A DNA stretch of 63,006 nucleotides, counting the filler, from Octopus bimaculoides (taxonomy: Eukaryota): the NCBI RefSeq assembly GCF_001194135.2. It is 5 parts of 5 records of this genome, joined end to end, with 100 filler letters (N's around TTAATTAATTAA, not from the genome) between each part and the next. Parts side by side here need not be neighbours in the genome. Positions count along the whole stretch, not along the records: positions 32,298 to 56,342 come from NC_068990.1; 4 more parts are not named here. One strand, 5' to 3'. The number at the start of each line of letters is the position of its first letter. Position 1 is the stretch's first letter. This document shows positions 22,499 through 48,343 of this stretch, one piece after another. The position numbers and the translations under genes are program-made. A model generated the notes under the pieces. The model was not told the DNA's origin, ran no database searches, and was given only the letters and a program-made list of their open reading frames with translations.

Positions 22499-22540
<42 letters not shown>

Positions 22541-23410: not shown

Positions 23411-23444
23411 GACCACATTGCAAAACAACAATGCCATATTGCAC

Positions 23445-24554: not shown

Positions 24555-25099
24555 TATGCATCAACAATAATTATAAATGCGAATGAAACTTCAACACATG
24601 TCCATTTCCGTTGTTCTCTCAGAACATATACACTGTAAAGTCGGACCAATCTCTTAATGTCACTGCCCAAACGAATAACAAATCCCCAAAAAGAACGATG
24701 GACAGATAAACATGAATACCACAAAATGGTCGATTTATGATTTACGTACACCATAATGCAACACTTCTTCCTTCAGAAACATACAGGAATAAACTCATAC
24801 ACTAAATATCCAATAAATTGAACGAATCCCACGGCACGTGCCGTAGAAGTCCGATAACAAAACGAACACAACCTGCATTGCGCAAACAACATACAATACA
24901 AAACTTATTACAAGAAAGACTCAAAACAAGCCCTCATAACAAAACATACGGATGCAAGACAATATTCCCCAAAGGGGAAAAATGCAGCACGCACCTCACC
25001 GGCACGAAAGTGCAGCAAGTGATGCTACAGAAAGTTACTTGAAACTAACAGATGTCAAATAATAATAGTGGTGATGATGATGACGAATGTTGCCTTATG

Positions 25100-27330
25100 T
25101 CAGCTTATGTGAGACAAGAATTTGCCTACGAACTTTGGTGGTTAAAGCGGAGGTTGGACCTTTAAGAGAATGCCTTTTGCTGAGCAGTGGTTCAGTAATG
25201 ATGTAGACTGACCACAGCTCTTATCCCAGGAGAACATCAGCAGATAATAGAGTAAGAAGAATAATGAGGAGGAAGTGGACCAGCGAAGAAAACAGGATAG
25301 TGATGCAGTGCTACTGAGGAAGTGAACCAAAAAAAGGGGTTATAGAAAACGGATGTTAAAACTTTGGGTAGAGAAGGGTATAATTAAAATGACTGAGCAG
25401 AGACAAGTAGACCAAGCTAATGCTGTTAGGAGAAGAACGTGGACGACAGAATTGGAGGTAGAAAAGTTCACAAGAGAACTGGAATAGAAAGACCAGGCAG
25501 TGGGAAAGACGAACAACAACATAAGAGATACAACTCAAACGAAAGAAGAACTAATGGAAAAAAATAATAGCACTACCAATAAAGAAGGGATAATTGGTAA
25601 CAGTGATTTAAGTGATTTAAGTGAGGAATATTAAAAGATTTTAGATGAGTTGCAGGAAGCAATGAGTAAAGAAGTAAGAAAAAGATTACCAGTATTGAAT
25701 GGTACCAACAGAAGGAAGCTGCTAGATATGACTAGGAAAGTAAAATCAGTTATCAGTAGGACAGATACTAAAAATATAGGTGACACTAACTTATTGATCT
25801 ATGCAGGAGTGGTAGTAATTACTAGATGATTAGATATTCCACAAGGAAATATTAGAAAAGAGCGAATGTGGATTATTTACAAAATAAAGTGAAGACTTTA
25901 AGACAAGATCTGAGTAGAATAGAAGCCTGGAAACTGAGCAAGATAGGAAAAACAAGATTTAAAACTTCACTTGAGAAACGATACTTAGTCAAAGTGAAAG
26001 GCTTTGGAACAGTAATAGAAGAGTTACAACAGCGTATCATAGCAGTAGCAGGTAAGCTTCCCAGATATCAGAAAAAAAAGATCAGAATCAGCAGAATAGA
26101 GTATTTGAGACAGACCAGAGGAAATTTTATAACCAAATAAATAGTGGAGAACAAAGTACTGAAGATGAGAAACCTAATGAAGAAGAAGCTAGAAATTTCT
26201 GGAGTAATAAGCCAGTCAATCATAACGAAGATGCAGTATGGTTAAAAAAAGTGAGGGAACAAATAGTCAGAAGCAGCCAGATATAAGATTAACTACTGCC
26301 TCAATGAGTAAAGCGTTAAGTAAAATACCGAATTGGAAGGGCCCAAGACCAGGTTTAGTTTAAGTGTACTGATTAAAGAAATTTGGTAGTTTACATGGGG
26401 TGGGGAGGGCTGAACGAATAATTTCAGGATTGCCTTAATAGAGGATTAATACCAGATTGGATGACTAGAAGAACACTACTGCTAATGAAAGACAAAAGCA
26501 AGGGTAATACAGTTAGCAATTATAGACCAATCACTTGCTTACCATTACTGTGGAAGCTGCTTACAGGAATGTTTTCAGAAAGCATTTACGAGCACCTTGA
26601 CAGCCAGAATTTGCTACAAGAAAAGCAGAAAGGTTGCAGAAAGAACGAACGCTAGAGGAACGCATGATCTATTAAATATAGTCAAAGCAGTTCTGAATGA
26701 AGCAAAATTTAGAAAAAAAATCTAACAATAGCATGAATAGATTATAAGGAAACATATGAAATGATCCCACACTCATGGATAAGTGAATGTCTGAGTATAT
26801 TCAGTAAAGCAGACAACAAGAGAATTAGCTTTAGTATGAAAAAGTGGCAAGTAGGTCTCTACTCAAGTCACACGTTATCTCCTTAATATTTGTCTTATTT
26901 CCCCCAGTTTAGTATTAAGGAAGACAAAGGTAGGGTATCATTTCAGAAATAGTAAAGGAAAAGATAATCCATTTGCTCTACATAGACGACCTGAAACTTT
27001 TTAGTAAGAATGAAAAAGAGACAGATTCCTTAATACAGACTGTACACCTCGTAAGCAAAGATATAGGTATGGAATTTGGACTAGATAAGTGTGCAATATT
27101 AGTCATGAAAAGGGGACAGGCAGTTAACAGTGAAGTTAACAGTGAAGTTACTGATAAATGACATGAACATGAACCTAGTATAGTACTAGAAAGTAAGAAA
27201 TATAAGAAGTTGTGGGACTTTAACAATCAGACGGAAAGACTAATAGAAGCTAGAAGGCCAACATGAGAGGTATAGAGAAATAGCAAAGTACCAGGACCTA
27301 GCCATTGAATTACAGACTATGGAAAGTGCT
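25100..27330 (+). mobile_element. R4/Dong-like non-LTR retrotransposon, decayed and internally deleted
   Basis: N-terminal Myb-like RRKWTSEENRIVMQCY...GYRKRML.LW; RT motifs NYRPITCLPLLWKLLT and HLLYIDDLKLFSK...GMEFGLDKCA; then a jump to KLWDF...RP and KYQDLAIEL. Confidence 0.88.
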
Positions 27331-28039
27331 ATCTGAATTAGTTCGTCTGGTCGCCTGTAGATCGAGCGAGTGGTCGCCGTTGGTTCTCTCGTAATACTGG
27401 TTTCTTCTAATTAATCTGCTTTATACTTTTTTGGTATTTAAGATTTTGAGAATTCGCATATTCACATCAATAATGAATGTAGTCCTAGATGTAAACTTAA
27501 AGCCCCTCCATATTAAACAACACTTTATATATATAAGAATGCACGTATGCATAGAAAACACATTTTGCTTCATGATACGCTAAACATTTCAACTAGCACA
27601 ATCAACTCCACACATTGAAATATCATTGTGACTATTTAACGAACACACAGGATAACTCGGATCAGTCACAATATATAAACAATAGCTATTTGGGCAACAA
27701 TCGATACCTCTACAATGGTACATATGTTAACACATTTGTAGGACCTTGTTTAAGTACACACTTAAGTTTATAACTAAATAAAAACGTATAAATTCTATGT
27801 TGATATTCTTTCGTCGATACTGGGTTTGAAACGACAGCGCTGCAGTATGAAATTTAGTACAATTTTTATATAAGACCCTAAAACCAGAATTTACTTTCTA
27901 TGACATTGGTTTCTACCTCACTGATGGATGCGGAATATTTCATAGCAGTGATGTTCACGCACTAAATACCTTTAGAATAAGAAAAAAAAAAAAATAAAAG
28001 CTTATAACTACCATGAGCATTATAGCTCTTAAATCATAG

Positions 28040-28560
28040 TGGCTATAAAAGTCACTAAATTTGAAGTCTTAGACACATTCCTGAACCTAGATTTAAGGTT
28101 TTACAAGCCATACCATAAACGAAATCAAATTCTTAGGTATATACGAATACTCGTGCATGCTCCACCTCTCTTTAAAATCCTTATAGCTTATAAAATATCT
28201 TTCTTTAATAAGATCTCTTCCTCTAAAGGAATTCTCACTACTATAATAGTGTTCTGGTCAACTGTGTTTTATTGAAAAGGTATCATCCATTTTGACCCAA
28301 ACAAGTACCAAGCCTAAAATAGATTTGAGAAAGTTTTATGAGTCACCCCATTAGTTTCTTCTTAGATGTAAATAAGAAATTCGTTCTTTTAAAAAGTGTT
28401 CTGCGAATGTTCCTTATCATGTAAGTCCTAATTCGAAAAGCATAAATTTCTGTAACTCACTCAAGATGCCCTCTCATGACTGTAGCTGGTTAGCTCAGTT
28501 TTCGTGAAGACATTTTTACCACCTTGCTGCTAAATAAGGTAAGCGAAATAAAAACATATT
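28040..28560 (+). mobile_element. Penelope-like RT C-terminal remnant
   Basis: TFLNLDL.FYKPYHK.NQILRYI...HAPP resembles the Penelope FLD..L...YKPY.KPN...YI...SNHP segment. Confidence 0.45.
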
Positions 28561-29483
28561 GGTTTCTGTGAAATTAACTTCCAAGAGAGATATTTTAAAC
28601 ACCAGTCTTCATTCAAAAAATGTAGACGAAAGGAAAAGCACAAAGATAAAGGTCTGCTACATAATTTGACAAATATTTATCATATCGGTTTGGCGCAGAA
28701 ATGTGGAGAAGACTATATTAAAACTCAACCCAAACGGAACAAATAAATAAATAAGATAAATCAATAGCCATTAAACTGTATCACAAGAAAAATTAGATAC
28801 AGTAAGCATTTAAATGAAACGCTCCAGCACTTTTAATGAAACAGCCTGAGAAGATGAAGAAACTCACACTTGAAACGCATGCGTTACGAAGTTAAAACTT
28901 AGCACTCAGATATATTAAAGCGCAACATACAGTACACCATAATGTAACACTACTTACAGAGGAATGACCCAGAAAGAGACGAAAATGTATTGGACAGCAA
29001 TAAAAATCTGTCACAAACAGAGAAAATGGAAGCATCAGTAATCCAATGATAATTAAGAAATGTCCAAGGTATAGATGTCACAATGTAGCTAATTGTTGTT
29101 TTAAGGAAAGCCTGCCGCAATAGTAAACCAGAGTAGCGGAAACAACAAAACGTAAAATTAACCTGAAAATTATAAATTTATTGAAAGGAAATTTAAATAT
29201 CGATCTCTTATTAAAGATTCAAATATCTTCCCACACTTATCCCAAATAAAACCAAACTAAATGCGGACATTCAAGACTTTATCATATGCCTTCACACAAG
29301 AGAACTTTTCAGCAAGTGAACTGATTTTAAATGTTATCTTTACATAGAGAAATAGAAGAGTATTTGAATTTTGATATAGATGCTGTATCAAAATTCCATA
29401 ATTATATCCATAATTACAAACGAACCCTTCAGACATAAAATAATGAAGTTCTACAGATGTTGAAAAAAGATAATTAATTATAC

Positions 29484-29645
29484 ACGCAGGAGTGGCTGTG
29501 TGGTAAGTAGCTTGCTTACCAACCAAATGGTCCCGGGTTCGGTCTCACTGCGTGTCACCTTGGGAAAGAGTCTTCTACTATAGCCTCGGGCCAACCGACG
29601 TCTTGTGAGTAGATTTGGCAGACGGAAACTGGAAGAAGCCCGTTA

Positions 29646-29723
<78 letters not shown>

Positions 29724-29926
29724 TGTATATGTTTGTTTGTCCCCCAGCATCGCTTGACAAACGATGCTTGTGTGTTTGCGTCCCCATAGCTTAGCGGTTC
29801 GGCAAAAGAGACCGATAGAATAAGTACTAGACTTACAAAGAATAAGTCCTGGGGTCGATTTGGTCGACTATAAAAGCGGTGCTCCAGCATGGCCACAGTC
29901 AAATGACTGAACCAAGTAAAGAGTAA
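29484..29926 (+). mobile_element. SINE family A, full length and gap-free
   Basis: A-box TGGCTGTGTGG (29493-29503), B-box GGTTCGGTCTC (29536-29546), internal (TA)n(TG)n, conserved 3' half, AAGTAAAGAGT tail. Confidence 0.94.
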
Positions 29927-30329
29927 CTTATCTTTAAAGATGCTTCTAAGGCCCGGAATACATTTACGTATGCTCAATCATATATCTGAAAGCATATTTT
30001 GTATAACATTTTCTACAAAATAGATTTGAATTATTATTATAGCTCTTAACAGGTTTCGCTTTTCACATGAATTCATGTATTTTGCAGTATATACTGTATC
30101 AGCATTATATACTATCTGCTCCATATTTTAAAATCGAAGTTTACAGCATTAAAATTAATCAAGGCGGAATTAATTGATTAATATTGCAAATATATTTATA
30201 GTCAAATATTTTGCCTGACGTGAATTTTGTTAGTAGAATAGCTAATGCATTAGCTACTACATTTATTACAACAAAGCTTCCAGATTTGTGATGAGCCTTG
30301 CATTGCTAATTTTACCAATACTGCAGCGA

Positions 30330-30800
30330 TACACTCACATCTAGCAGCAAACCGTCCTGGGACTGTTACATATTCGATATTCTGTTACATATTCGATATT
30401 CATGAGAGAATCAAAAGAAAGGTTACTCGAATAATTCGCATAATTCAGCTGCAGGAATTTCGCAGATTCTGGACCATAGACATGCATGTGATAGTCTCAC
30501 ATGTAGCAGCAAACATTCCTGAGTCTATTGCTACATATCTGATATTCTAGAAAGCATCAAACGAAAAGTTAGTTGAGTAATTCGCATAATACAATTGCAG
30601 GCACTTGTCAGCTTCTGGTCCACAGACATGCAATTTCTAACTCTAATTGAATGGCATCAGCACCTACGAGTTGGTTAATCTTGTACCACCTACACTCAGA
30701 AAATCCCGAGGTGCTCATCACACCTGCACCTCTCATTGTGTAGGTTGTATACACTGTTCACCGTTAAACATACTTTACTCTGTCCCGACAATATAATCTT
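30330..30800 (+). mobile_element. L2/Crack-like LINE 3' remnant with an old tandem duplication of about 165 bp
   Basis: Two diverged copies of CACAT.TAGCAGCAAAC...TACATAT..GATATTC...GAATCAAA...TAATTCGCATAAT...CAGACATGCA, then NG...ELVNLVPP. Includes an exact internal duplication of CTGTTACATATTCGATATT. Confidence 0.5.
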
Positions 30801-32297: not shown

Positions 32298-32534
32298 CAT
32301 CTACCTGAAGGGGTTTGTGTTTTATCTACCTTCCTACTTATTAGGATTTTGGTTTTAGCTAGGTTGACTCTAAGGCCCTTCAATTCTAGACCTTGCTTCC
32401 ACACCTGAAACTTCTCCTCTAGTTCTGATAGTGACTCCGCAATTAGGGCAAGGTCATCAGCATAGAGGAGCTCCCAGGGGCAACCTGTCTTGAACTCCTC
32501 TGTGATTGCCTGGAGGACTATGGTAAATAATAGG
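32298..32534 (-). mobile_element. RTE-clade LINE RT fragment, 5'-truncated, with a fold-back 5' junction
   Basis: LLFTIVLQAITEEFKTGCPWELLYADDLALIAES...GLRVNLAKTK. Perfect 38-bp inverted repeat at 32479-32516 and 32535-32572. Confidence 0.9.
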
Positions 32535-32769
32535 CCTCCAGGCAATCACAGAGGAGTTCAAGACAGGTTGCCTCCTCTGTGATATTAAGATTAATTAAAA
32601 TGACACCCTTAATGGGCAGGGGTTCAGATTTTGAGTGATTAAATTTCTTAGATTGCTATATTAAGTTTTGAGTGTCCATATTTATTTACATTTTTATCTT
32701 ACACGTTTTACTTGTTTCAGTCGTTAAATGATAATGAAATTAGAATCATTTTAGTTTTCCGTTCTGATT

Positions 32770-33235
32770 TCAGTAAAATGATGTGTCTTACCACGGCTAG
32801 CCATATTTAGTTACATCCTTTTACATTCTGCATTCAAATCCCAGCAAGATGTACTTTGTCTATTTTGCTTCAGATAAAACAAGTACATGTACTGAGATTG
32901 ATTTACTCTTTTGTATTCTCACTGCAGAATGTGTAGCCATGTGCTAATGCTGGAAAAGGTTATCTTTAATATTTCTAACATCAACAATAGTTATCATTAT
33001 TATTGTGGTGTGGTGATATAAGGGTGATGGATTCATAGAATCATTAGAGCATCAGACAAAATGTATTGTAGTATTTGTTCTGGCTCTTTACCTTCTGATT
33101 TTACATCTTGCTGAGGTCAACTTTGCTATTAATCCTATCAAACCCAATAAAATAGAAAACCAGATTTAGTTGACAAACTCTACTTCCCAAATTGTAGACT
33201 TGTGCTTTATGAGCAATTATTATTATTGTTGTTGT
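32770..33235 (+). mobile_element. Two decayed SINE family B copies, head to tail
   Basis: Two successive CATTC/TTCTG..TTCAAAT...CTTTG...ATAAAA...GTAC units, each followed by ATT-rich sequence. Confidence 0.55.
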
Positions 33236-33274
33236 TACTATTTTTCATTGATTTAAATTAAACTTTAACTCCAG

Positions 33275-33514
33275 ATGTCCAGAACCATTTTGTGAAAATC
33301 CGTAATACAATTCTGGTTTTGTCCTCGAAAACATTGTGGGATACCGAAAATGTATCACCAGAAGACTGTGCAGCAAAATGTTGGTCTGATAAAAGGTGTT
33401 TGTCATTTGAAATCAGTAAAAAAAGAGGAAGATGTTTCTTATCAAAGGAAAATGCAGCTATCTTCAGGGAAATAAGGAGAACTAAGGGAAGAGATTACTA
33501 CCAACGGGTAAAAC
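33275..33514 (+). CDS. PAN-PAN-sushi-GON protein, exon encoding PAN/apple domain 1 (phase 1-1; upstream exons not seen)
   Basis: Acceptor ccag, donor C|gtaaat, 240 nt. ...SPEDCAAKCWSDKRCLSFEISKKRGRCFLS...RDYYQR has the PAN C-x3-C...C.SF...C.L...DYY pattern. Confidence 0.85.
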
Positions 33515-34372
33515 GTAAATATTCTTTGTATTTTATTACAGGAACTTTGTTACTCTTTTCCATTTATATTCCATAATTATAGAGACAACCATTTCTGTAA
33601 AAATATTAGCTGGTTTGACCTACATGCACAGACATAGACATGTTCCAGAAATAAGCAATATCAGAAACACTAAATACTGTGTGGGCATTCTCATACCGCA
33701 TTTATTCACCTTGAACACTCTTATGCATGTTTTCTATTATTATTATTATTATTGTTATTATTATTATATAGATATAGATATTTTTAGAATATTAGATAAT
33801 CATGCAGAAGCATCATGTAATTGAAATTTGATTAAGATATTAGAAAGTTATCTGGTGCATTATTTTTAAATGATCAATTTATTATAAAAATATAATCCAT
33901 TCACAAAATAATTTGTCAGCATAAGACAACTTTTCAGAATGACTGTGAATTGTAGTATATCATGACACACACACAAAAGCTTGCCTGCATGTTTTGACTG
34001 TAGATCATCCGTCTATATACCCCTCTCCTGATGGTCTGCTTTTGTGTAAGACTGAATGACCATAACAACACTGGACATGTTGCTTGACCACCTGTCTAAG
34101 GGAGTCTTGATCCCACAAATGTAAACCATCAGAGGAAGGATGTACAAATGGATTACTACAACTTTTATGCTGAGACAAGGTTTTAAGTGGGTCCCAAGAT
34201 GTTCAACAACTAACATGAACTCTAACTAGAGTGTCACTTTATAGATCAATTATTTGTTTATTATAAATTGTTCATTTAAAGAATTACAGCAATGTTTTTG
34301 TTTATTTAAAATGTGTCTGTTTATCAGTGGGGGTATAACATATATTTTTTGATTTTTCTTTTTTGCTTTCAG

Positions 34373-34606
34373 CCAATGAGAAACTTATTATATTTAAAAA
34401 AGGTAGCATACAAGGATATGACAATCTTGGACACTATAAAAATGTGAGTTTAAAGAAGTGTAAGCAAACTTGTCGGAAACATCCAGAATGTAATTCATTT
34501 GAATATAAAGAAGAAACAAAGTTATGTGATCTGAGCAACGTCACTCACCTGACTAATGACATTAAATCCAACAGATGGGGCTGGGATATTTACATCTTTA
34601 ATCCAG
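34373..34606 (+). CDS. PAN-PAN-sushi-GON protein, exon encoding PAN/apple domain 2 (phase 1-1)
   Basis: Long polypyrimidine tract plus ttcag, donor G|gtcagt, 234 nt. SLKKCKQTCRKHPECNSFEYKEETKLCDLS...WDIY. Confidence 0.88.
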
Positions 34607-35664
34607 GTCAGTAGAGTGTTTCTATTTTATTGTTTATATACTAAACCATTATAAGAGAAATACATATACTAACAATTTAAAGCTGACCCAACAAGATTGT
34701 AATTTTAGAAACCAATCATAATGCCCACTACTTAATAAGTGCCACTCAAAAGAGCTCATCTACAAAGTCAAAGTTCAAAATAATGAAGACACTGTAAAAT
34801 TGTATTTAGACTTCGCAGAAAACACTTTTAGGCCTGTTTTACGCAATCCATAACAGTTGTAGAAGGAATTCTACATCGTTGTCTAAGTACACCTGACACC
34901 TAAAGGACAAGAGTATAAACAATCCTACAATCAAGTGGAGCACTTTAGCTAAGGAAGTGCCTATGATGGATGAGGTAGAAGATATAATTTGTGTGTAACT
35001 GAAGAACTGCACAGCCTGTCTACAACCAGTATCCTAAACTCAAAAGAGGAAACATTTGCCCCCTAACTTAATGTGAGGAAATTTAGTCTCCATTATTTAA
35101 ACATAATTCCATCTGCAAACAGGATAGCAGTAATCCTGAATGCAGATTTCTACTCACAGGGCCTCCTGTTTTCATCTCTCACTGTCATTGCAATTGTCTC
35201 CCTGCTCCTTTTTTTCAATGACTTCATTATTGTCCCGATTGCCACAATCAGAACTGCTGTTAGTAACAGTACATATACACTTCACATGGCTGATTTTAGA
35301 TCCAAACCCTTTCAACAATACAACTATATCTGCCATCTATCCCTCTTTATTCATACTTTATCTGCTGGTTACCTGTATCACTACTTATGTCTAATACCTT
35401 GATTACCTTTGCTATCATCTTATATTGCACCCTTATATAATCTAACCCCCTTCATTTGCTGTAAATGGTATACTTCAAATACCTGTTTCCTCTTCTTTTT
35501 CTATTTCTTTTTGTATATATCCAAATGTCTTTATGCGTAGATGTTAAATTTTTCAGTTTGTTTCACTCAGTATATTTCTTTCTAAATGTCTCATTATCTT
35601 TGTATTCTCACTTTCCTCCTGACACACTTTCAACATTGGTATCAATTTCTCTTATCAATTTCAG

Positions 35665-35835
35665 GTTACCGGAAGATTGACTGTGGAACTCCAAAAGACC
35701 TTGCTCGTGCATTGAAGGTCTACACGAACACTACCTATGAATCTGAAGTGACCTATATTTGCCCAATGGGAGAAAAACTTACATCAACATGTGAAATGAA
35801 CAATGAATGGACTTTAGTTGAGCCTACTTGTAAAA
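35665..35835 (+). CDS. PAN-PAN-sushi-GON protein, sushi/CCP exon (phase 1-1)
   Basis: tttcag acceptor, A|gtaaca donor, 171 nt. IDCGTP...TTYESEVTYICPMG...TCEMNNEWTLVEPTC has four Cys plus the conserved Trp. Confidence 0.88.
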
Positions 35836-36955
35836 GTAACATAGATTCTCTCTTGTTGCCTCTGCCAATGTAATTTTGTTTTATCATTGTGTTAAATGTC
35901 CAAGAGGAAGAACTATGACCGTTTTTACTGTTTGTGGTTAGTGGGAAGGAGAGAGGAAGTTGTTCCCAAACTAGAAACCTCCCAAAATGCTTGCAACACA
36001 ATGGATTCCATTAATTCTATCCAAGGGTCGGCAACAACACCAAATTGGGCAATGGATTGTCTGTAATTCAAAAAACTAGACAGGTGGAATCATATTTCCT
36101 TTAACAGGATTCAACACAGTTTCCATTTAACAAATCTTATCCTCAAGATTTAGTATAGAAGCAAATTTTTAACCATGCAGGGAAAACTGCAGCCAATTCA
36201 AGTACTTTTTTGATATTTTCAAGTTCATTTGTATACTTATTTCCATTTTAACACTAGACCTCTTATTCTCCTGGTAACATTCTTCTATATGTAGGAAGCT
36301 CTATTAATCATCTTCATAACCTATTATGGCATCTATAAACCACTTTTTGGTGGGACATCTTTCACTTTCATCTTTGCTAGTCTTTTTCTCTTTAAGAAAG
36401 AAATTGACAAAAATTCCTCTGTCTTTATATTACTGATACACATCAATTTCTCTGAAAGGCTTGCTACAAGAAGCAAAAGTTTTTTCGGACCCCAAATGTT
36501 TCTCAGATATTTTCCCACCTATCCATGCATTAAGTTTACAGAACAGCTAAATTTCATTTTGATGCATCAGAAGTTCACAGTGCATTTGTTAACATTATTT
36601 CACACGCTATATTAAGAAAAAAATTGCATTGTCTTCTCATCTATAATATTACAGTCCATCTAAATAATTCACCATTTACCAACACAAGAGAAACTGCTTG
36701 AGGCAGCTTTGTTATGTTTAGCAGCGGTTATTGTTGTTGTTCTTATGGTTGTGTTGAAACTAAAACAGTTGCATTGGTGTAGTGTCATGCTATATGTCCC
36801 ACCCTTCATGTATCCACCTCTGTATTGCCTTCCAAAGCATTTTCAACTCAATAATCAGGAATATCATGCTATTACAAAATAAAACAAAGGGGAATAAAAT
36901 GGTGTATGTGTGTTTTAAACATCTATTTAAAATTTTTATTATCATTATTTTACAG

Positions 36956-37227
36956 AACCTATGTCATGCAAAGACATAAAAATGTGTGGTAGGGATGCAA
37001 CTGATGGGGAATACTGGATCTACCCCTCTGTCCTTAACCATAAAAGATTAAAGGTTTACTGTCATGACATGGAAACAGATAAGCCAAAAGAATTTATCAC
37101 CTTACCACATGAAAATTTTGCATATGTACCAGCTTTGAAACCATTCCATTTATGCATGAACCGCTTTGATGAAACAATTAGCAAACCAGGGAAAACTATT
37201 TTTAAGAAAGTTCGAATTTATCCAGAG
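36956..37227 (+). CDS. PAN-PAN-sushi-GON protein, GON domain exon 1 (phase 1-0)
   Basis: tttacag acceptor, GAG|gtaaat donor. PMSCKDIK...DGEYWIY...KVYCHDMETDKPKEFITL..ENFA...T.F.KVRI matches the GON N-terminal pattern. Confidence 0.88.
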
Positions 37228-37628
37228 GTAAATGTTTAATTGTTTAATTTTCATGATGTTTTCTATAAATATAAAAACTTAGTGATTTGTTGATCTGGAA
37301 ATTTTTGATTCAGCCAAGAAAACTAATTGTGCACGCACACACACACACCCATGTATATTTATTTGTATATATGACAAACAGTCATTCATTTCCTCTCAAT
37401 ATAAGCCAAAAAAACAGGGTCTGGAAGATGCACATCATGACAGCACACCTTTGATGCAAGTCTGATGAAGTGCCTCTCTAATGTCTAAAATTGCAAACAT
37501 TACGGAAATTTTCACTTCGTATTTTTACATAAACTGGTGTTGCAAGTATAACTGGTACAGAAACAATTGTAATGAATCATTAAACTTTGGCTTCTTCTCA
37601 TTATTTGTATATACACACACACATATGC

Positions 37629-37665
<37 letters not shown>

Positions 37666-37677
37666 AGGAGAGAGAGC

Positions 37678-37719
<42 letters not shown>

Positions 37720-37792
37720 CACACACACACACACACAGACAGACAAACAGACAGACAGGCAGACAGACAGACAGACAGACAGACAAAGATAC

Positions 37793-37920
37793 ATCATCAT
37801 CATTATCGTCATTTAACACCTGTTTTCCATGCTAGCATGGGTTGGATCATCATCATCATCATCATCGTTTAACGTCCGCTTTCCATGCTAGCATGGGTTG
37901 GACGATTTGACTGAGGACTG
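37793..37920 (-). mobile_element. Two stacked RTE-type 3' termini with (CAT)n tails
   Basis: (CAT)n-TTTAAC..C.G.TTTCCATGCTAGCATGGGTTGGA occurs twice in tandem and is the reverse complement of the RTE end at 55950-56000. Confidence 0.75.
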
Positions 37921-37974
37921 AAGTGAATAAACTGGCTAATGATGTAATTTTTACCTTTATTATTCTGTCCACAG

Positions 37975-38151
37975 GAAATGGTTCTCGACAGATTTGATTT
38001 TACATTCACAGAACTTGAAAAAGGCAAAGGAAAACACAAACGAGGTTTTGGTGCTGCTGAAGATTGCTTGTATGGTAAATCAAGTTACTGCAAAAGTAAA
38101 GGGGAAATGAAGGTTGATCTAACACACACTGGTCTCATCCTTGGAGATTCG
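37975..38151 (+). CDS. PAN-PAN-sushi-GON protein, GON domain exon 2 (phase 0-0)
   Basis: ccacag acceptor, TCG|gtatga donor, 177 nt. DFTFT...FGAAEDCL...C.SKGEMKVDLTHTGL. Confidence 0.87.
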
Positions 38152-38800
38152 GTATGATTTATTTACTTATTTATTATTGTTGGAACCATAAGTTCAAATT
38201 TTATAAGAATTTCTGTTAACTTTGATTCAGTTAAGCATATGGATAGTGATAGCACTATCCCAAATGTAGAAACAGTTTAAAAGATATAAGCTGGCTTACC
38301 ACCTAGTTTCAGACCAGTCGCAGTGGAACCGTGTTAGTGACCAAGTTGCAGAGAGTGCAATGAAAATATCAATTCCACACAATAAAGTTAACAGATTTAG
38401 GGTGTTTTTGAAATACTAAAATGAGTCTTTTATGCTTTAGTTGCTTTGGTTTCAACACAAAGTCTCAGATAAAATCATTAACTCTGGAATTATTTTTGAT
38501 ATTTCAACCCTATTTTCCCTGTTCCCTGTTTAAAGTGGTTGCTTTCTTGGACCAAATGTTTTTAGAGATGGGTGTTCTTTCTTTTATAAACTGGAGTAAC
38601 TAGAGATATAAGCCTTGCTCAGTGACTCAAACACAATGGCTATAAAGGTAACAAGATTTGATTTTGTGACCTCCTGATTTGTCATTGAATACATTTACTT
38701 CACAACTATTGTGATTCCTATCTATTTTGTTTCTCAGAATGTTAATAATGTGATTATTATAACTTTGTGTTGATCCTATCTACTATTTTCATAACTTTAG

Positions 38801-38945
38801 GTTAAATGGGTGACATATGGTGATGACTCACGAATTAGTGATTTGACATATTCTGAAAATAAGCAAGTAGTAACAGCTACATGTGGAGGAAAATGTGGTG
38901 GATGTAAACCTGAAGGCAAGTTTACAGTGCAACTTGGTCCAGATG
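38801..38945 (+). CDS. PAN-PAN-sushi-GON protein, GON domain exon 3 (phase 0-1; terminal exon not identified)
   Basis: ctttag acceptor, G|gtaagt donor. VKWVTYG...VTATCGGKCGGCKP matches the GON C-terminal CGG.CG.C.P motif. Confidence 0.87.
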
Positions 38946-39202
38946 GTAAGTGAAATAATTTCTAATCTATATTTGTTTTTATATCACACATTAACCTCAC
39001 TAACCTCCATGTCAGAGCCAGATTAAAGCCAACTGACACCCTTAGCACTACTGGACATTGGTACTCCTTTAATTATTCTCTGACCATTTCCATAGGCCAG
39101 GGTCTATAACTGTATTAAAAATACTCTGTTTTTGAATTTCATTTAATATAAACAATTTATTTACTTTATGTGTGTGTGTGTGTGTATGTATATGTATATG
39201 TG

Positions 39203-39269
<67 letters not shown>

Positions 39270-39499
39270 AGTATTAGTCAAATACTAGAGTTGATTAAAT
39301 CTAATATACCTCTTCTCACCCTCAAAATTTGTGTACTTTTGTAAATATATGCAATCATATAAAATAATTTAAACTGCTTTCTATCATACATCTTTCCAGA
39401 ACCCTCAACTACTGGTGTGAAAACCTGTGAATTCCTGAGACAAAAACATTGTTCCAAGCCTGCTCGTGCACAGTGAAAAGTACAGAAAATTTTCAAACA

Positions 39500-40085
39500 T
39501 AATGTCTTGTGAAATATGAAATAAAAGTTGATGATTTATGATGTGAAAAATACCTTCAGCTAATGTTTTTTGAAATGTGCAATGCAAAAATTTCATGTCT
39601 GATGAAATGTTAAAAAGTGAAATTTAATAAAAGCTAATTGTTTTTCAAGAAATGAAACATGTAAAAATATATTTTGTGAAATGTAAAATGCTGATGTTAT
39701 GTGAAATTTTATGAGATGTGAAACATCTGAAGTTGTGTAATAAGATGTTTAATGCAAAAATATGCAAGCTCATGAATGTAAGAAAATGATGCATTGTGAA
39801 ATATGATTCATGAGAAGATGTATTGGAAAATGTGATATAAAAGCCTTGTGAAATATGAAATTGGACAAGATATCTTTTAATATCTGAAATGCAAGGGCTT
39901 ATATCAAATGAAATGTTACAAGGTGATGTATTGGAGAAATTCTGAAATGATAAATATTGGAGAATGGTATCTTGTAAAATGTAAAAGATTTTATTGTGAA
40001 ATGTTAAATGCTAAAAAAACAATGTTGTTGCAAAATATGAAATGTGAGATGGTTTGTCTGTAAAATGTGAAATATGAAATGTAAT
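39500..40085 (+). repeat. Cryptic TGTGAAAT/TGAAAT-rich simple sequence
   Basis: Many same-strand TGTGAAAT and ATGAAAT words without a fixed period. Confidence 0.6.
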
Positions 40086-41434
40086 CATACTAACCTCTGA
40101 GAAATATCTGATATATTTTCAAAACGATTTTGAGGTATTTATGCAGGGACACATTTTAAATGCAAGTAATAAGGGTAACTAGAAATGGAACGAGCTTATT
40201 TATGAAGGAAAGTGTATAAACATAACCAAGGTAAATGAGTTCATAAGAATGTCCAAGGTTTGAATATCACATCCTTTGGATGACAACTTCCTCCATAAAA
40301 GAAAAAATACCATTCCTGGGGCTCTCCTCTCTTCAATTATACTATGGTGCAGCACAACAGCTGCAATGGCTGCCATCTCCCTCAAGATTCTTTGCTTGAG
40401 TTCTAAAGCTGTGCAGGGTTTTCTCAACATACTCTCTTTCTGTCAGATAATCCCACAAGAAATAGTCCAATGGAAAGTTCAGAGAGTAATTACTTTTGTT
40501 GGCAACAAAAGCTTTCTCTCTCTGAGTGAAAGGCAGATTGTACGATGCTTGAGCATTGCAAGATAGTGAAAAGTTTTGGGAAGATGAGTTGTTGGGGAGA
40601 AATTTGTGAGGAATAAATTGTGTGCAGGGGCATATGAGCATGGGTAAGTTTGAAAGTAATGAAGCTAACATGTTCTGCAGGTTGTGCACTACCAGTGAGT
40701 GGGTATGTTAAATTGTAAATGTGTTGAAAGAAAAATTGAGCATAAGTGGCATCAGATGTAGTGTTGAAAAGAAAAGACTCCACTTTTTGTTGTTAGGAAG
40801 AGGATGCAGCCATAGAAACCATGCCAAAGCAGACAGTAGAATTTGGTGCAGCCCTCTGGTTTACCAGCTCCTATTAAACTTTCCAATCCATACCAGTATG
40901 GAAAACAAATGTGAAATGATGATGATAATAACGATGATAATGATGATGACGGTATTACAGATCCACTTCAGCTGATTTAGTGTGATGAATATGTATGTAT
41001 GCATGTGTGTGTGTGTGTGTGTGTATGTGTGATTACATAGGTATGATTGGATATGCTTGACAAGTGACAATTAAACCGCATAAGATTTATCTCTAATCCA
41101 AAACACGTTAAACTCTCACTCTCACTTGAACACACCGGTTCGTAATGACATAATACGATGTATATAATTATATATGGTTATAGAGTTCCCAGGTCTGGTA
41201 ATGTCATTACTTAGAGTCCCACCAAATAGTTAAACGATATTTCTGCAAATAATTATCGGACAATCAAAATACATAACTGAACTAATTTATAGCAGTGACC
41301 TTGGAAGTGCCTGCGGGTTGTCATACATAATATAGTGTAGGGGGAATAATTAAATTTTGTTGTTCTTTAGGATCAATAATAAACGTATGCATTGATTTTA
41401 TTTCACTTATTACTATTAAACTAAGTAATCCTTA

Positions 41435-41539
41435 GACCAATTAACTAATCGATTGTTTAATTAATCGAAGGTTCGTCAGAGTCCTTTCATCGAATGATTG
41501 ACCGAATGATTAATCAAACAATTGATTCGTTAATTGGTC
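41435..41539. repeat. Short palindromic (MITE-like) element with 32-bp arms
   Basis: GACCAATTAACTAATCGATTGTTTAATTAATC versus the reverse complement of the right arm: 3 mismatches. A related partial copy lies at about 14040-14160. Confidence 0.7.
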
Positions 41540-42165
41540 AACTAGGAAACTAATAATGATAACAGGAGTGAAATAGAACCAGCGCTCGTAAATGAACAAA
41601 ATTTGTTTCAACATATAATTTCACATCAAAAGTCTTACAAACCAAAAGTAACAAAAGTATCTGACATGACAAAAAAAAATTTTCAAGTCAATGAGTTGCT
41701 TCCCTTAGATCAGTTGAGTAACGAATTTCAGGTTTAATTTATGCAGCAATAAAATTTCCAAATAAAGCAAATAATAAAATCAAGATTACTAATCTCTTGG
41801 TTGATGGTAAGGGAGAAAAGGTTAACAGGAAAAGACGAGATCCATCAGATTTCAAGGGTTGCCTTTGAGATTTATTAATGACTGCAGCAAAGACTCATCT
41901 ATTAAATTCAAATAGGAAATCGACTGGCTTCAGAAATATTCTCGGAATAAAACAATCATCTCCATGCCTAAAAAAGGATGAGGTTGTCACTACTAGACTG
42001 CATTTCATCATGTCTGCTCAGTGAAAGCTAATATGGGATAAACAAGAACATCATACAAACATGCACATGTATCCAGATTCAAGATTCTTGCCTAATACAT
42101 GTGCCGTGAGTGTCTGCTTTAAATACATGTGCCATGAGTGTCTGCTTTAAAGCTGGCACGAAGGA

Positions 42166-42228
<63 letters not shown>

Positions 42229-42420
42229 CACATACATACATACATGCATGCATTCATACATACATTCATATATACATGTATTTTTAAGTATACATATAAA
42301 TGTATGTTTATATGTATGTATACACATACATATTTAAAAACAAAAAATTCACTCATTAGTCCAAAATCAGTGAAGAAGAATAGTGATAGAGGCAAAAAAG
42401 ATGTGCATTTGCCAGGCAAG

Positions 42421-42830
42421 TCATCATCATCATCATCGTTGTTTAATGTCTGCTTTCCATGTTGGCATGGGTTAGACAGTTTGACTGAGGACTGGCGAGC
42501 CAGAAAGCTGCACCAGGCTCCAACCTGATCTGACAAAGTTTCTACAGCTGGATGCCCTTCCTAATGCCAACCACTCGAAGAGTGTAGAGGATGCTTTTAC
42601 GTGCCACCAGCACACGGGCCAGTCAGGCGGTACTGGCAACGACCACGCTTGAATGGTGCTTTTTACATGCCACCTACATGAGAGCCAGTCTGGTGGCACT
42701 GGCAACGACCACACTCAGATGGTGTTTTTAACGTTCCACTGGCACGAGTGCCAATCAGTTGGTACTGTCATCGGCCACATTAGCGATTTTGATTTTGATT
42801 TCACTTGCCTCAATAGGTCTTCGCAAGCAA
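42421..42830 (-). mobile_element. RTE-associated repeat ending in a (CAT)n tail
   Basis: Same terminus as 37793-37920, plus GCTGGATGCCCTTCCTAATGCCAAC and internal repeats of GGTACTGGCAACGACCAC. Confidence 0.7.
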
Positions 42831-43019
42831 AGTTTATTGTTCAGTGAATGAAGGGTACTCATAAGTAGGCTGGTTAAGAAATGATTTCAGAATGGAAGCA
42901 GGAAGAATTAGAAGTGTTGGGAAAAGAAGTAGACAGAAAGGAAATAATGAGAGATATAGAAATATAGAGGTAATAGACTAGGATAGAAAAAGAGAGAGAT
43001 AAAAGGACAATAAAGCAAA

Positions 43020-43430
43020 ACTGATGTCGCAATAAATCAACGAAATTATCAAGGTAAGGAGAGGAAATAGGTGTAAAGGTACAAAATGAGATTAACAGAT
43101 GGAAAAAATTTTCTTCCCATCAACCATGTGAGGTGCTAAGACTGAGTATAGTAGAGGAGAGAATGAGAGATAACTGAAGGTCGAGAAAGGAAGTGATCAG
43201 TGAGAATTGAGTGGGAAGGCAAGGAGGATAATGAGAATGAGAAGTGAAAGTGGTTCCAGGAGGGGATGCAAAGGAAGAGAGGGAGTAATATATGCTGATT
43301 CTGCTCTCATGTTATTACAGCCACTGTGTAGTTCCATGGATAGAGAAATGATGGAGAGCTGAGTGCTAAAAGAATGAAATTCTGGAATGTTTGATTGTAC
43401 AGAATGGGTGTAGGGACAGGGCCTAGCACA
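43020..43430 (-). mobile_element. Decayed L2/Crack-like LINE 3' fragment
   Basis: Purine-rich + strand. The minus strand echoes the SLFY...GC..EL...P...R...HP..V layout also seen at 30650-30780. Confidence 0.4.
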
Positions 43431-43599
43431 CACAAGCATAAACAACATGATTTTATGACATCATCTTTTGTTGTGATTAATGAATCTTCTTAAGCACAGC
43501 AAATTATCAAGCATCCTTTGTAATTTCCATGAGGCTCAGCATCTTGAGATCACCCTTTACGACTTCATCTCATATCATTCTGGACCCCTCTCTTCTACA

Positions 43600-43935
43600 A
43601 GTTCATCTACTTTAAGTGACCAGCACTTTATGCAGCTGTCCTCATGGATACATATCACGTGACCTAAACAGCAGTCTTTTCTCTTGTATGCTACACATGA
43701 TTCCTCTTATGCCTAATTGTTCTCTCAATAATTTAGCCCATTGTCATACATGCACACTGACATTCCACATTTAACAGAGCATACCGGTTTCATTCCTCTC
43801 TAGTCTTTGCATGTCCTTTGCATTCAAGGCCCATGTCTAACTACCATGTAGGACTGCTGTTTACATAGAAGCATCATACAATTCACCTTTCACTCTGAAT
43901 GAGATACATTTTGTTGCCAACAGAGGTAAAAGGTC
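43600..43935 (-). mobile_element. Decayed RTE 3' ORF fragment
   Basis: Reverse complement similar to the RTE segments at 53890-54170 and 55705-55900. Confidence 0.55.
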
Positions 43936-43949
43936 ACCTGTCAGTGACC

Positions 43950-44145
43950 TATCTCTGTGGTGTTGGAGACGTTTGGAGGGGCTGGGCTGCTAATGGTGAA
44001 GTTCTTGTCATCGTTGGCAGCTCACCTTACCGAAGTGTTAGATGATGCCCATGAGGATGCTTGGCTGTTCCAACATCTTAGCCTTACTATTGCCCATGGT
44101 AATGCCATGAGCATGTTGGCTTGCTTCAGAAGGTTTTGTTGAACC
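43950..44145 (+). mobile_element. CRE-like RLE LINE C-terminal fragment
   Basis: VLETFGGAG...KFLSSLA..L...HEDAWLFQHLSLTIAHGNAMSML fits the ET.G..G...FL..L...WL.QRLS.AI.RGNA pattern. Confidence 0.6.
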
Positions 44146-45016
44146 TTGAGGTGTGTGGTAAACTGAGGCACTTGGTGTTGAATTGACGTGTTCTTTCTTT
44201 CTTTGCTACTCTTTTCCCATTTTTGATTTTGGACATGCAAATGATTATAAAGAAAAAAAAATAATAATAATTGTGCTTCGGGTTTCGGATTTGGATTTTA
44301 ATGTGGCATATTCATGTAATTAAATATGTTGTAAATGAAATCGCAAAAGTGTTTTGTTTTATAAACTCGCTCGTTACTGTTTAGCATGTAAAAAAACTTA
44401 AAAGGTTCTATATTCGGAAAAAACAGACAATTCAGATCAAAGTTGCGTATTGGGTTGCCTCAAAAAATGATAAGAGAGGAACACCTGTACTCTCAGGTAC
44501 CGTGTATAATTGAGTATGCAGGCTTTTTTTTCTTTTTCTCGCTCTCTTATACTCATTTTCATTGCTATTTCCATTTATTATTGTAAACTGTTATCTTTTG
44601 CAGTTCTTAATCAAAATCAAAGAAATAACATATAATGAACTATTGTATATCACTAAATGACACAAAGCAAATATTATTTATTACTCTTCTAATAATTGGA
44701 ATTTATTTCATTTTCAGTAAATCTTATAAAAATAACACCTCGAGTCAAGCAGTTAGTTTTCAATAACTTCTACACAATTCATGAATTCGTCTTTCGTTTA
44801 CATAATCCGCAGTTAATAATCATTGATACAAGAGAAAAAAATTAAAGAATATTATATTACCATAAAGATATTGCATTATTATTACTATAAATTAGATTTA
44901 TAATTACACTAATTTTGAATATAATACGTAAATGTTATGGATGTATGTTAAAATATTCAGTGCGGATCTAATTTGGGCGACCTTAGAAAGGGCGTCTGGA
45001 GATTTACATCGTTGTG

Positions 45017-45068
45017 ATGGCTGCATCTCTCCGGTCTCTGTCGTCGGCTGCAGTGTCAGCCAGACAGG
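45017..45068 (+). CDS. NDUFV1: NADH:ubiquinone oxidoreductase 51-kDa flavoprotein, coding exon 1 (transit peptide)
   Basis: ATG then MAASLRSLSSAAVSARQ (Arg/Ser/Ala-rich, no acidic residues); donor G|gtatgt; phase-compatible with exon 2. Confidence 0.75.
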
Positions 45069-46071
45069 GTATGTATACATACATTCTTATTTCATGTATT
45101 TCACTCTAAATCTCCCGGATCTTTTGTAATTACTACCCGTTTGAATCCTGCGACCATTGACATTGTCGAGGTCGTCAAAATAATCTTTTCTACTTTAGGC
45201 ACACGACCTGCTCCTGAGAGCAAGAGAATAATTCCTCGCTGGTCGTGTTCCCCATTTTCGGTTTCAATCCCCGGTTCATTCCATTTAATTTTACACCTTA
45301 TTTATATTGTTAATAGTATAACACCTAGAAAAGCACGAACGTCGCACAATTTCATTTCCATCTTCTTGCTTTATATAACAAATTATGATTTCATCTCTTT
45401 AAGGACTCAATTAACTGAGATCGATCAGCCAAATACCAGTCAAATACCGATAGATTGAAATCAGTTTTATGTAACTTAATCATCTCTATCGTCCATAGAG
45501 AAATACCAATTTTATTTTATGTGAGTAGGGAAAACAAACATGCTGAAGGAAATCAAGAGCATATATTTACCTGGACGGGTGTCGTTCTGTTATATAATTA
45601 GACCTTGAAACTAAGCAAGCGCAGAAAGTAAACATACATCGTAATAAAAAGAAATAATATATTTCATAATCAAATGGCATCTTAATATTTCAATTTGGAA
45701 ATGAAGCACCCTGCAAGATACGTAAAGAACCTTGCGTTTTTGTTGTTTTGAGGATCCAAAACTTAAAATATACCTAACTTTGTTGTCTTCGAGATTCCCA
45801 CTCCGTTTAAACCATATTATCATTTAATTTCTTCTTTCAAATGTTATTCCTGTATTCTCGTGTAGTTTCTTCATATTTAATTTGAGAATAGGGCATTTGT
45901 TATCCTTCCATAACGTATGCTATTTTGACAGCATTTCCATGATGTACTAATCCTCCATTCGGAGAACATACACACACGCTGGAGTTTGTAACTAAATAAA
46001 ACTTTTTAATTTCATCTTCCCACCATCATCACCATCATTTAGTGTCCGTTTTCATACTGGCATGGGTTAGA

Positions 46072-46120
<49 letters not shown>

Positions 46121-46121
<1 letters not shown>

Positions 46122-46258
46122 TTTATTTAAAAGCAGCAGAAATATAACAAAAGGTATTACTCAGAGTTTCGCGTTCCCGATCGTCGGACAGATTTGTTAA
46201 CAAATCGTGAAACTCTAAGTAACAGCTTTTGTTATATTTCTGCTGCTCTTAAATAAAG
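46121..46258. repeat. 53-bp inverted repeat in a Penelope-type terminal repeat, with a degenerate hammerhead on the minus strand
   Basis: Arms 46121-46173 and 46206-46258, 5 mismatches. Minus strand CCGACGA...GAAACUCUGAGUA. Confidence 0.7.
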
Positions 46259-46355
46259 CATATTACTCTACCTCTGGTATTTGAGTACCCCTTTTTCCAC
46301 CTTGTTTCACATTTATGTGCTTACTCCGTTCTGTATATATATATATATATATCTC

Positions 46356-46618
46356 GAAGTGTACAGTATTATATATCCATTACGGCTGATCTTACCGATT
46401 GGTTTTGCACTAGGGGTTCAACGGAGTGTTAGATAACAGCCTGATTATGTAACCCTGTGCTTTCCAGAGATGGTGGTTATGGAATGCATATATTTATTCC
46501 ATTACTCTGAAGAGCATGGGGTTACATAATCGGTCTGTTATCTAACACTCTGTTGAACCTCTATTATGAAATTGATTGGTATGATTTGCTGTAATGAATA
46601 TATAATATTGTGCACTTC
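46356..46618. repeat. Fold-back element with 114-bp arms in NDUFV1 intron 1
   Basis: Arms 46356-46469 and 46505-46618 align without gaps, 91 of 114 identical. Inner ATGGAAT/ATTCCAT stem. Confidence 0.9.
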
Positions 46619-47203
46619 AATTAATATACCACTCTATTGACAAATATAGGAGTGCATATTTTTTCTGCCTCATGAATTTTTAGGCAGCTAGTGCAGCCCC
46701 TCAGCTTACCAGCCCTGGTCAAACCATCCAGCATGGACAATGGACGCTAAATGAAGATGATATATTTGCCTTTCTTTTGGTATTAATACATGAAGTACCA
46801 GTTGAGGGCAATGAATTGATGAAATTGTTCAAGCAAAAGATGGGTTGCATTGAGGTATCTTTTCTGGCTTCTTACTTTCTGACAGTAACACCTGTATGGA
46901 AACTGGATGTGAATGATGATGATACTCCTATTATTTTCCTTCTATGCCTTTAATCTGTCTGTTTGCTTTGACTATTGCATTAAATTACTCCCTGTTGCCT
47001 TTTGTCACATTCCTATTTCAATTTGACCAGCTAAGTTGTTTGTTCTCTTCATTTAGTCTTCAAATTCCAATTTCACCTGATTATAAAACACAAAAACTTC
47101 AACTTTGTCTCATTTGTCTGAGAGTAAGGCAAGCAAAGGCAACAAACACTTCCTTGCCATCTCTGACGAAATTATTAACAAATGTGTTTCTTTCTCTTTC
47201 CAG

Positions 47204-47268
47204 TCCAACTCACCAAAGCTGCTGTTGGTTACTCAGTTGTTAGAAATCAGACAACTAATTCCAAAAAG
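47204..47268 (+). CDS. NDUFV1: NDUFV1 coding exon 2
   Basis: ctctttccag acceptor, AAG|gtaatg donor. VQLTKAAVGYSVVRNQTTNSKK bridges phase 1 to phase 0. Confidence 0.78.
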
Positions 47269-48343
47269 GTAATGTTGAATTTACCTGATCTAGTCAAACA
47301 AAAGACTCAATATGCTCATTAAAATGGGTACAATATCAATTATCAAACTAGAGTTATGTTCTCTATAGTGTTTCCAACATCCAGTGACTCAAATCCACCT
47401 GCCTTCTCCATTGTAAACAACACCAAAACCAAATGTTTACATACGAAGAGACTTAACAATTAAACAAATGCAATATGCCCCATTTTGCTTCCCAGCACCT
47501 TATAAGTAAATATCTCTATGTCTGAGGGACTTCTGCGGGTGTGCTTAGATTCAGTTAGTTAGTTTGAAGTGGACGAGATATTATCATGATTAAAAAATTT
47601 TAAAAAAAGCAGGGTAACAACTCTGAAATTTAAATTATGAAAATTTATTCTATCCAAATACATGACAAAATGTCTGTAACATATATGGAATTCAAGACCT
47701 ATGAACTGGTTGTCCAATACATTATATGTCGCAAACTACTACATAACAGTGTGCAGCATAGTCCCAGGTGGGTGCAAGATCTAGGTATTGTTCTTAAGTG
47801 TTTGATTGACAACCTGTTTCTGTAGGTCTGTGTATGCGAACCCAAGTGAGGCCTTTCACAACCCTAACACTTACAATTGCTATGACATCACAACCATCAT
47901 CAAGTCAAATATTTGAAGAAACATTAGAATTAGAAATATCTGTAATTGGGTCATATGTTTATGACAAAAATGTGTTTTTGTCAGTTCACAGTAAAGAGGA
48001 CTAAAGATGCCAATTAAATTCCATATTTTAAATAGCCAATATGCCTCTACCAAAATAAAGTAGATCATTATCATTTTATATTAACTTTATACTATATTGG
48101 TATCAGTTGATCAGGCTTTTAGAAGTTGATTTATGGTTTGATATCCTTCCTGTTACCAATGCATTTGGTGGTAAAACTCCACCCTAAACTATCTTTAAAT
48201 TGTTAAGTAATATGTGGAATTATTTCTAACCACAACAGAACTATTTAAAACTCTAGTTTCATAATTTTTCATGTTTTTCTTTTTGTCTATTATAATGTTT
48301 GTATGATTGGATACACTAATTATATTTTTATTTCTACCTTCAG

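Follow-up and report, generated by a model that had tools for sequence, protein, structure and literature searches.

The window analysed here is a stretch of 63,006 nucleotides of Octopus bimaculoides DNA assembled from five parts, one of which (window positions 32298-56342, from NC_068990.1; hereafter the piece) carries most of the gene LOC106874924. The product of this gene is a protease-less protein of 465 residues, in which a signal peptide, two PAN (apple) domains, a sushi module, a GON domain and a short tail follow each other. The best explanation, in which we place high confidence, is that it is a secreted, non-catalytic PAN-PAN-sushi-GON binding glycoprotein, its function being predicted. 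An initial annotation had interpreted six exons of the piece as a non-proteolytic, exon-shuffled PAN-PAN-sushi-GON protein that is probably secreted and may be a gland product, and this interpretation holds, as the signal peptide directly precedes the first PAN domain (PAN1) and no ADAMTS modules are present. The six exons are coding exons 3-8 of an annotated nine-exon gene. Both the gene and its family are already known, the former being annotated in RefSeq and its close relatives being named in UniProt, and the novelty of the locus is therefore nil.

Exon structure of LOC106874924 and its complete product

The borders of the six exons, all on the plus strand, were re-derived from the sequence, with AG before and GT after each exon. 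Their lengths (240, 234, 171, 272, 177 and 145 nt) and coordinates are those initially proposed and sum to 1239 nt, although this length corresponds to two nucleotides, 412 codons and one nucleotide rather than to 413 whole codons. The three 5'-most of the six exons have lengths that are multiples of 3 and are symmetric (phase 1-1), so that, as had been suggested, PAN1, the second PAN domain (PAN2) and the sushi module each occupy one phase 1-1 exon; the following three have phases 1-0, 0-0 and 0-1. Exon 3 (33275-33514, 240 nt) encodes PAN1, with a PAN_1 match at residues 4-77, AG/GT borders and 100% identity to the RefSeq protein XP_014778328.1. Similarly, exon 4 (34373-34606, 234 nt), which encodes PAN2, is supported by its splice borders, by Pfam and by identity to XP_014778328.1. 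Exon 5 (35665-35835, 171 nt) encodes the sushi, or complement-control (CCP), module. The GON domain is distributed over three exons, as expected from the initial annotation, and the Pfam profile is matched across exons 6-8 at positions 2-196 of 199. Exon 6 (36956-37227, 272 nt, phase 1-0) carries the first third of the domain with the CxxxxxC...DGEYWIYP motif, exon 7 (37975-38151, 177 nt, phase 0-0) its middle part and exon 8 (38801-38945, 145 nt, phase 0-1) its end with the CGGxCGGCxP motif; all three rest on splice borders and Pfam, and exons 7 and 8 also on tblastn with GON-Abd-1, a relative from Abdopus aculeatus.

The existence of a 5' signal-peptide exon and of a terminal exon beyond 38945 had been predicted, and both were found. 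Terminal coding exon 9 (39400-39476, plus strand, 77 nt including TGA) starts at a phase-1 acceptor and encodes a 25-residue tail, EPSTTGVKTCEFLRQKHCSKPARAQ, which contains two Cys residues, corresponds to residues 441-465 of GON-Abd-1 and XP_014778328.1, and ends in …KPARAQ, without KDEL or HDEL. Two AATAAA polyadenylation signals at 39520 and 39626, identified by sequence pattern, mark a likely 3' untranslated region (39520-39631, plus strand). Splicing of the seven exons of the piece yields 437 residues that are 100% identical to residues 29-465 of XP_014778328.1, the O. bimaculoides LOC106874924 product, which is labelled "uncharacterized protein LOC106874924" in RefSeq and "GON domain-containing protein" in UniProt (A0A0L8GSV1). 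A tblastn search of the piece with GON-Abd-1 matched exactly these seven exons and nothing else; the rest of the piece, covered on both strands for additional GON, PAN or sushi exons, gave chance-level matches only. The 5' exons lie outside the piece; the same search found no signal-peptide exon in the piece upstream of 33275. Window positions 32298-49476 are 100% identical over 17,179 bases to CM046610.1 (GCA_001194135.2) and correspond to positions 13431-30609 of an extracted locus sequence (L001). LOC106874924 occupies about 88.124-88.135 Mb of CM046610.1. The two 5' coding exons are located on L001, 3-4.4 kb upstream, at 10001-10052 (MVAIANALMLGTLYSCL plus one base) and at 11205-11234 (ANPAQCLTPP, phase 1-1), which extrapolate to window positions 28868-28919 and 30072-30101. 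They supply 28 residues, comprising only the signal peptide, directly before PAN1. The hydrophobic N-terminus encoded by these two exons, MVAIANALMLGTLYSCLA, is typical of a signal peptide as judged by eye.

The nine coding exons total 1398 nt, equivalent to 465 codons and a stop. Beyond the signal peptide, PAN, sushi, GON and the short tail account for the entire protein, and there is no membrane anchor. Four Cys residues are located in each of PAN1, PAN2 and the sushi module, nine in GON and two in the tail, and there are four N-glycosylation sequons. None of the exons makes a long stand-alone open reading frame (ORF), which would fit a pseudogene in decay or open frames that lie together by chance. 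Against this, the seven consecutive exons have canonical splice sites and no internal stops, and protein identity to other octopod genera is 89-91% across every module. A chance arrangement is excluded because the spliced 437 residues are 100% identical to the corresponding part of XP_014778328.1, and, given the intact spliced frame and the octopod conservation, this reading was rejected as having a negligible probability. The expectation that the gene would be easily missed was not borne out, since it is present in RefSeq for O. bimaculoides and Octopus sinensis and in GenBank for Octopus vulgaris.

Recognition modules, the GON domain and the absence of a protease

A Pfam scan of the spliced protein recognised both PAN domains and GON above cut-off, as had been anticipated, while the expected Sushi match was below it. 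PAN_1 (PF00024) was matched twice (E 2.1e-18, 66.4 bits against a cut-off of 21.4). The AlphaFold model of the 437 residues has a mean per-residue confidence (pLDDT) of 75, with most of the GON part at 83-97, and its comparison by Foldseek bears out the proposed apple/PAN fold through matches to the domains of prekallikrein, factor XI, Toxoplasma MIC4, the galactose-binding lectin SML-2 and the N domains of plasminogen and HGF. The Sushi (PF00084) score is weak (16.9 bits against a cut-off of 20.7, E 0.0086), yet the whole model (1-56 of 56) is covered. A sushi profile built from 15 modules of the octopus protein and its relatives, in which C6, C32, C42, W48 and C55 are invariant, was used against the PDB and retrieved CCP proteins only, led by CR1 (1.3e-36) and followed by CR2, DAF, MCP and MASP-2. 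The sushi exon product has the four-Cys/Trp pattern of CCP modules and is homologous to solved ones.

GON (PF08685) is matched at residues 217-408 with 120.9 bits against a cut-off of 22.6 (E 8.7e-35), and it can be aligned with other GON proteins at the conserved Cys residues as well as at DGEYW and CGGxCGGC. The first ~40 residues of the domain (SCKDIKMCG…DGEYWIYP…KVYC) resemble the base region of fibrillar procollagen C-propeptides (5k31, 4.7e-06; 4ae2), and exon 6 by itself gives a Pfam match to COLFI, the procollagen C-propeptide family, as well. Beyond these ~40 residues no solved sequence relatives of GON were found. A model of GON alone is confident (pLDDT 86, predicted template-modelling score 0.84) and has no significant fold match in the PDB by Foldseek, the best E-value being 0.2 and the template-modelling score ≤0.22; fibrinogen-like matches (ficolin, tenascin) were weak and not significant, and were not used. 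Because a confident model finds no significant PDB match, the GON fold is experimentally uncharacterised, which is a gap of the whole domain family and not a peculiarity of LOC106874924. Octopods share 93% identity in GON, 84-96% in the PAN and sushi modules and 84% in the tail, and in comparison with two squid proteins GON (47-48%) is the highest or near-highest scoring module. The domain is therefore under constraint.

The octopus protein shares the C-terminal GON domain with ADAMTS9, ADAMTS20 and Caenorhabditis elegans GON-1 and differs from ADAMTS9/20-type proteins in the modules that precede it. It lacks the propeptide, reprolysin, disintegrin-like, spacer and TSP1 modules and comprises 465 residues, in contrast to ~1700-1900 in those proteins. 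Pfam found no reprolysin, TSP1, TSP1_ADAMTS, ADAMTS spacer or other ADAMTS module in the spliced protein, where this place is occupied by PAN, PAN and sushi; the product of LOC106874924 is protease-less. True ADAMTS9/20-type proteins scanned in parallel carry Pep_M12B_propep, Reprolysin, the spacer and 9-12 TSP1 repeats, and their GON domains are 32-36% identical to that of the octopus (~1e-12).

As the piece begins only ~1 kb ahead of exon 3, and as the O. vulgaris orthologue and several Haliotis relatives are labelled "ADAMTS9-like", the exons could have encoded the tail of a normal ADAMTS9/20-type protease whose catalytic exons lay further upstream, outside the piece. The O. bimaculoides gene is not such a tail because the upstream exons contribute an N-terminus of only 28 residues, GON-Abd-1 has the same start and the 10 kb upstream contain no other called gene. 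In XP_014778328.1 and GON-Abd-1, both of 465 residues, an initial Met and a signal peptide lead straight into PAN1, and the initial concern that upstream reprolysin/TSP1 exons might exist is answered by their absence. With the signal peptide directly preceding PAN1 and no protease exons upstream, the interpretation as an ADAMTS tail was rejected and is extremely improbable. The proteins on which it leaned are themselves small: O. vulgaris CAI9728787.1 ("ADAMTS9-like" in GenBank) and several Haliotis relatives ("ADAMTS9-like" or "ADAMTS20-like" in RefSeq) span 311-385 residues, the Haliotis ones 311-364, and the "ADAMTS9-like" proteins have no reprolysin match, with GON as the only precomputed Pfam domain. 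These names reflect the GON match only. Those of the O. vulgaris and Haliotis proteins that were inspected have GON with or without PAN and sushi only and no protease domain, so that the names are misleading.

Relatives of the protein and distribution of its modules

The closest database sequence is GON-Abd-1 (UniProt R4G2C1) of A. aculeatus, with 91% identity over all 437 residues and full coverage of the query. It has the same length of 465 residues, signal peptide, PAN-PAN-sushi-GON-tail order and C-terminus as the O. bimaculoides protein, and its 90% cluster contains XP_014778328.1, XP_029640861.2 (O. sinensis), CAI9728787.1 (O. vulgaris) and GON-Abd-2. The O. sinensis protein is 89% identical and displays 24 extra N-terminal residues that add no domain. 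In the O. vulgaris model the PAN1 exon is missing with the frame kept and the junction codon is changed from CCA (Pro) to GCA (Ala); skipping of a symmetric 1-1 exon preserves the frame and explains the Pro-to-Ala change. GON-Abd-2 (306 residues) starts with MKSLLYLKKVAYKALTILDTIK, which is a wrong frame of the PAN2 exon (window 34310-34444), the frame used in the window giving MRNLLYLKKVAYKDMTILDTIKM, and its C-terminal part diverges within exon 7. Rather than a second gene, it seems to represent a frameshifted or partial cDNA.

Decapod relatives include GON-SepT-1 and GON-SepT-2 of Sepioteuthis australis and GON-Sep-2 of Acanthosepion pharaonis, which have a signal peptide, a C-terminal GON domain and the same sushi-to-GON junction. 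They are 38-47% identical to the octopus protein overall (GON-SepT-1 42%, GON-SepT-2 38%) and vary in the modules ahead of GON: GON-SepT-2 has two sushi modules, and the Sep-2 type of ~293 residues has no PAN and consists of just the signal peptide, sushi and GON. On these similarities LOC106874924 is placed with the cephalopod GON-Abd, GON-SepT and GON-Sep proteins of UniProt. As to whether the family had already been well characterised, a point left open initially, its members have been named but not functionally characterised.

The distribution of GON was surveyed by an exhaustive HMMER search of 1.84 billion cluster representatives with the GON part as query, which returned 545 proteins at E ≤ 0.001 and 178 at E ≤ 1e-10 and was far more informative than a word-indexed protein search with the GON profile, which gave 10 matches only. 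The domain survey covered 147 GON representatives among the best 150 matches. In this set, 112 of the 147 are 150-620 residues long, most of them with GON at the C-terminal end, and short protease-less GON proteins outnumber the ADAMTS-type. PAN and sushi are the most frequent partner modules, PAN_1 being found in 23 and Sushi in 11 of the 112 short proteins, against TSP1_ADAMTS in four and no match to reprolysin among the families listed for them. Single short proteins combine GON with trypsin, Kazal, link, VWA, C-type lectin, fn2 or collagen. Two long GON proteins other than the ADAMTS type were scanned and are mosaics rich in lectin modules such as C-type lectin, F5/8C, SUEL and WSC, and GON-GON proteins are present in Branchiostoma and Gigantopelta, the latter also having an EGF-rich protein with three GON domains.

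The best non-cephalopod single-GON matches to the octopus GON, at ~35-37% identity, are gastropod PAN(-sushi)-GON proteins of ~360-410 residues, with several paralogues in Patella caerulea (KAK6173913, KAK6188974 and KAK6169074) and Haliotis rufescens (XP_046356022 and XP_046351784). They differ from the octopus protein in having one PAN only by Pfam, in their low identity and in belonging to non-venomous grazers. Protease-less GON proteins are thus frequent and the PAN(-sushi)-GON arrangement is found in both cephalopods and gastropods. The suggestion of a lineage-specific architecture fails on the PAN-sushi-GON proteins of Patella and Haliotis.

These paralogues of ~400 residues in P. caerulea and Haliotis, the frequency of PAN and sushi among the short GON proteins and the joining of GON with lectin modules in the two long ones would also suit a molluscan protein with a general role in extracellular recognition or in the matrix, acting as an immune lectin or in mucus or matrix and having no special tie to the venom gland. 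The names of the cephalopod members, which reportedly derive from gland cDNA libraries, point the other way. Such a general role is a possibility to which we give a minor share of confidence; in mechanism it overlaps the secreted binding glycoprotein proposed above, differing only in tissue and target.

The N-terminal half of the GON gene has counterparts in the same genome. LOC128248838 and LOC128248840 of O. bimaculoides contain a PAN-PAN-sushi cassette 45-51% identical to this half, and the PAN exons of LOC128248838 (240 and 234 nt) have the same lengths as those of LOC106874924. In contrast to LOC106874924, both genes repeat the cassette several times and have no GON. LOC128248838 lies ~158 kb downstream on the same chromosome and LOC128248840 on the same chromosome record. 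Between positions 88282203 and 88327768 of CM046610.1, ~150-190 kb downstream of the GON gene, at least two genes with repeated PAN-PAN-sushi cassettes were noted, namely LOC128248838 and a PAN/sushi neighbour with a 1133-residue product. The cluster looks like a local source or sink of the shuffled cassette.

Predicted function, other features of the piece and implications

The secreted binding protein would be made in secretory cells and leave the cell in an N-glycosylated, disulfide-rich and non-catalytic form. The PAN pair and the sushi module may constitute a ligand-recognition arm for a protein or glycan, as the apple domains do in factor XI, prekallikrein and microneme lectins, while GON would contribute a further interaction of as yet undefined nature. 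The GON-Abd, GON-SepT and GON-Sep names reportedly go back to posterior venom gland transcriptomes described by Ruder et al. in 2013.

Three points weigh against this interpretation. The link between the octopus GON gene and the posterior salivary (venom) gland is presumed from the UniProt names and from the reported origin of the sequences that bear them. In the library covered by full-text searches there was no statement on posterior salivary gland expression of cephalopod GON proteins and no paper discussing these proteins. The PAN(-sushi)-GON architecture is also that of grazing gastropods, so that a venom role cannot be ancestral. Finally, the only tested function of GON is intracellular, in endoplasmic reticulum (ER)-to-Golgi transport (PMC3338439).

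In that work a signal peptide and GON alone rescue ER morphology in gon-1 mutants and ER-to-Golgi transport, inside the ER and with no need for protease activity (PMC3338439). The octopus protein is essentially a signal peptide with binding modules and GON, the latter being its most uniformly conserved module, and it could accordingly be read as a helper of the ER lumen or early secretory pathway of a gland cell, which aids ER-to-Golgi export like the GON of GON-1/ADAMTS9 and does not act on prey or matrix. This is rather unlikely. The protein does not end in KDEL or HDEL, PAN and sushi are typical extracellular binding modules and the octopus GON is only distantly similar to the true ADAMTS9/20-type domain, at the 32-36% identity given above. 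In addition, the family has reportedly been described as a gland secretory product. An extension of the same idea, which we regard as distinctly doubtful, would make stand-alone GON proteins in general dedicated secretory-pathway factors, with GON speeding ER exit in active gland cells and PAN/sushi selecting cargo or providing an anchor. The secreted, non-catalytic binding glycoprotein remains the preferred reading of LOC106874924.

Other features are present in the piece around the gene. The next gene downstream is an orthologue of NDUFV1 (NADH dehydrogenase flavoprotein 1, the 51-kDa subunit) at window positions 45017-56342 on the plus strand. Its locus annotation comprises Complex1_51K, SLBB_2 and NADH_4Fe-4S in a 471-residue product starting at L001 position 26150 (window 45017), and ORF pieces at 49234-49500 and 51099-51371 fit the NDUFV1 family. 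At the start of the piece, positions 32298-32540 on the minus strand translate to ...ELLYADDLALIAESLSELEEKFQVWKQGLELKGLRVNLAKTKILISRK, which looks like a reverse-transcriptase fragment of a non-LTR (long terminal repeat) retrotransposon, and an inverted repeat of ~37 bp lies beside it, its arms spanning ~32480-32516 and ~32537-32573. At the opposite end, an ORF on the plus strand (55927-56342, ...GDFNGHVGRRAGGFHGIHGGYGFGSRNEEGTRLLEFCDATNLMVCNTNFRKPASHLVTYRSG...) runs off the piece and resembles the endonuclease domain of non-LTR retrotransposons. The intron between exons 6 and 7 contains, at 37631-37902, a microsatellite of (AGAG)n and (AGAC)n, behind which a 56-bp unit, (CAT)n-TTTAACxxCCGCTTTCCATGCTAGCATGGGTTGGA, occurs in two tandem copies. 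Diverged copies of the core motif are located at 42455, 51906 and 55960, where none are expected by chance, and the 56-bp unit is probably an abundant octopus repeat resembling short interspersed nuclear elements. An Rfam scan of the piece gave no match.

The practical value of these results lies in the correction of labels rather than in discovery, as mollusc proteins named "ADAMTS9-like" that have no protease matter for counts of metalloproteases in genomes and venoms. A small, well-conserved secreted GON protein would also be a convenient subject for a first GON structure, and the octopus protein could probe whether the ER-export role of GON-1/ADAMTS9 is a general property of the domain. 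If stand-alone GON proteins were indeed secretory-pathway factors, the cephalopod GON gland protein would be part of the secretion machinery, not a component of saliva, and would provide the first tractable protease-free model for the GON domain.

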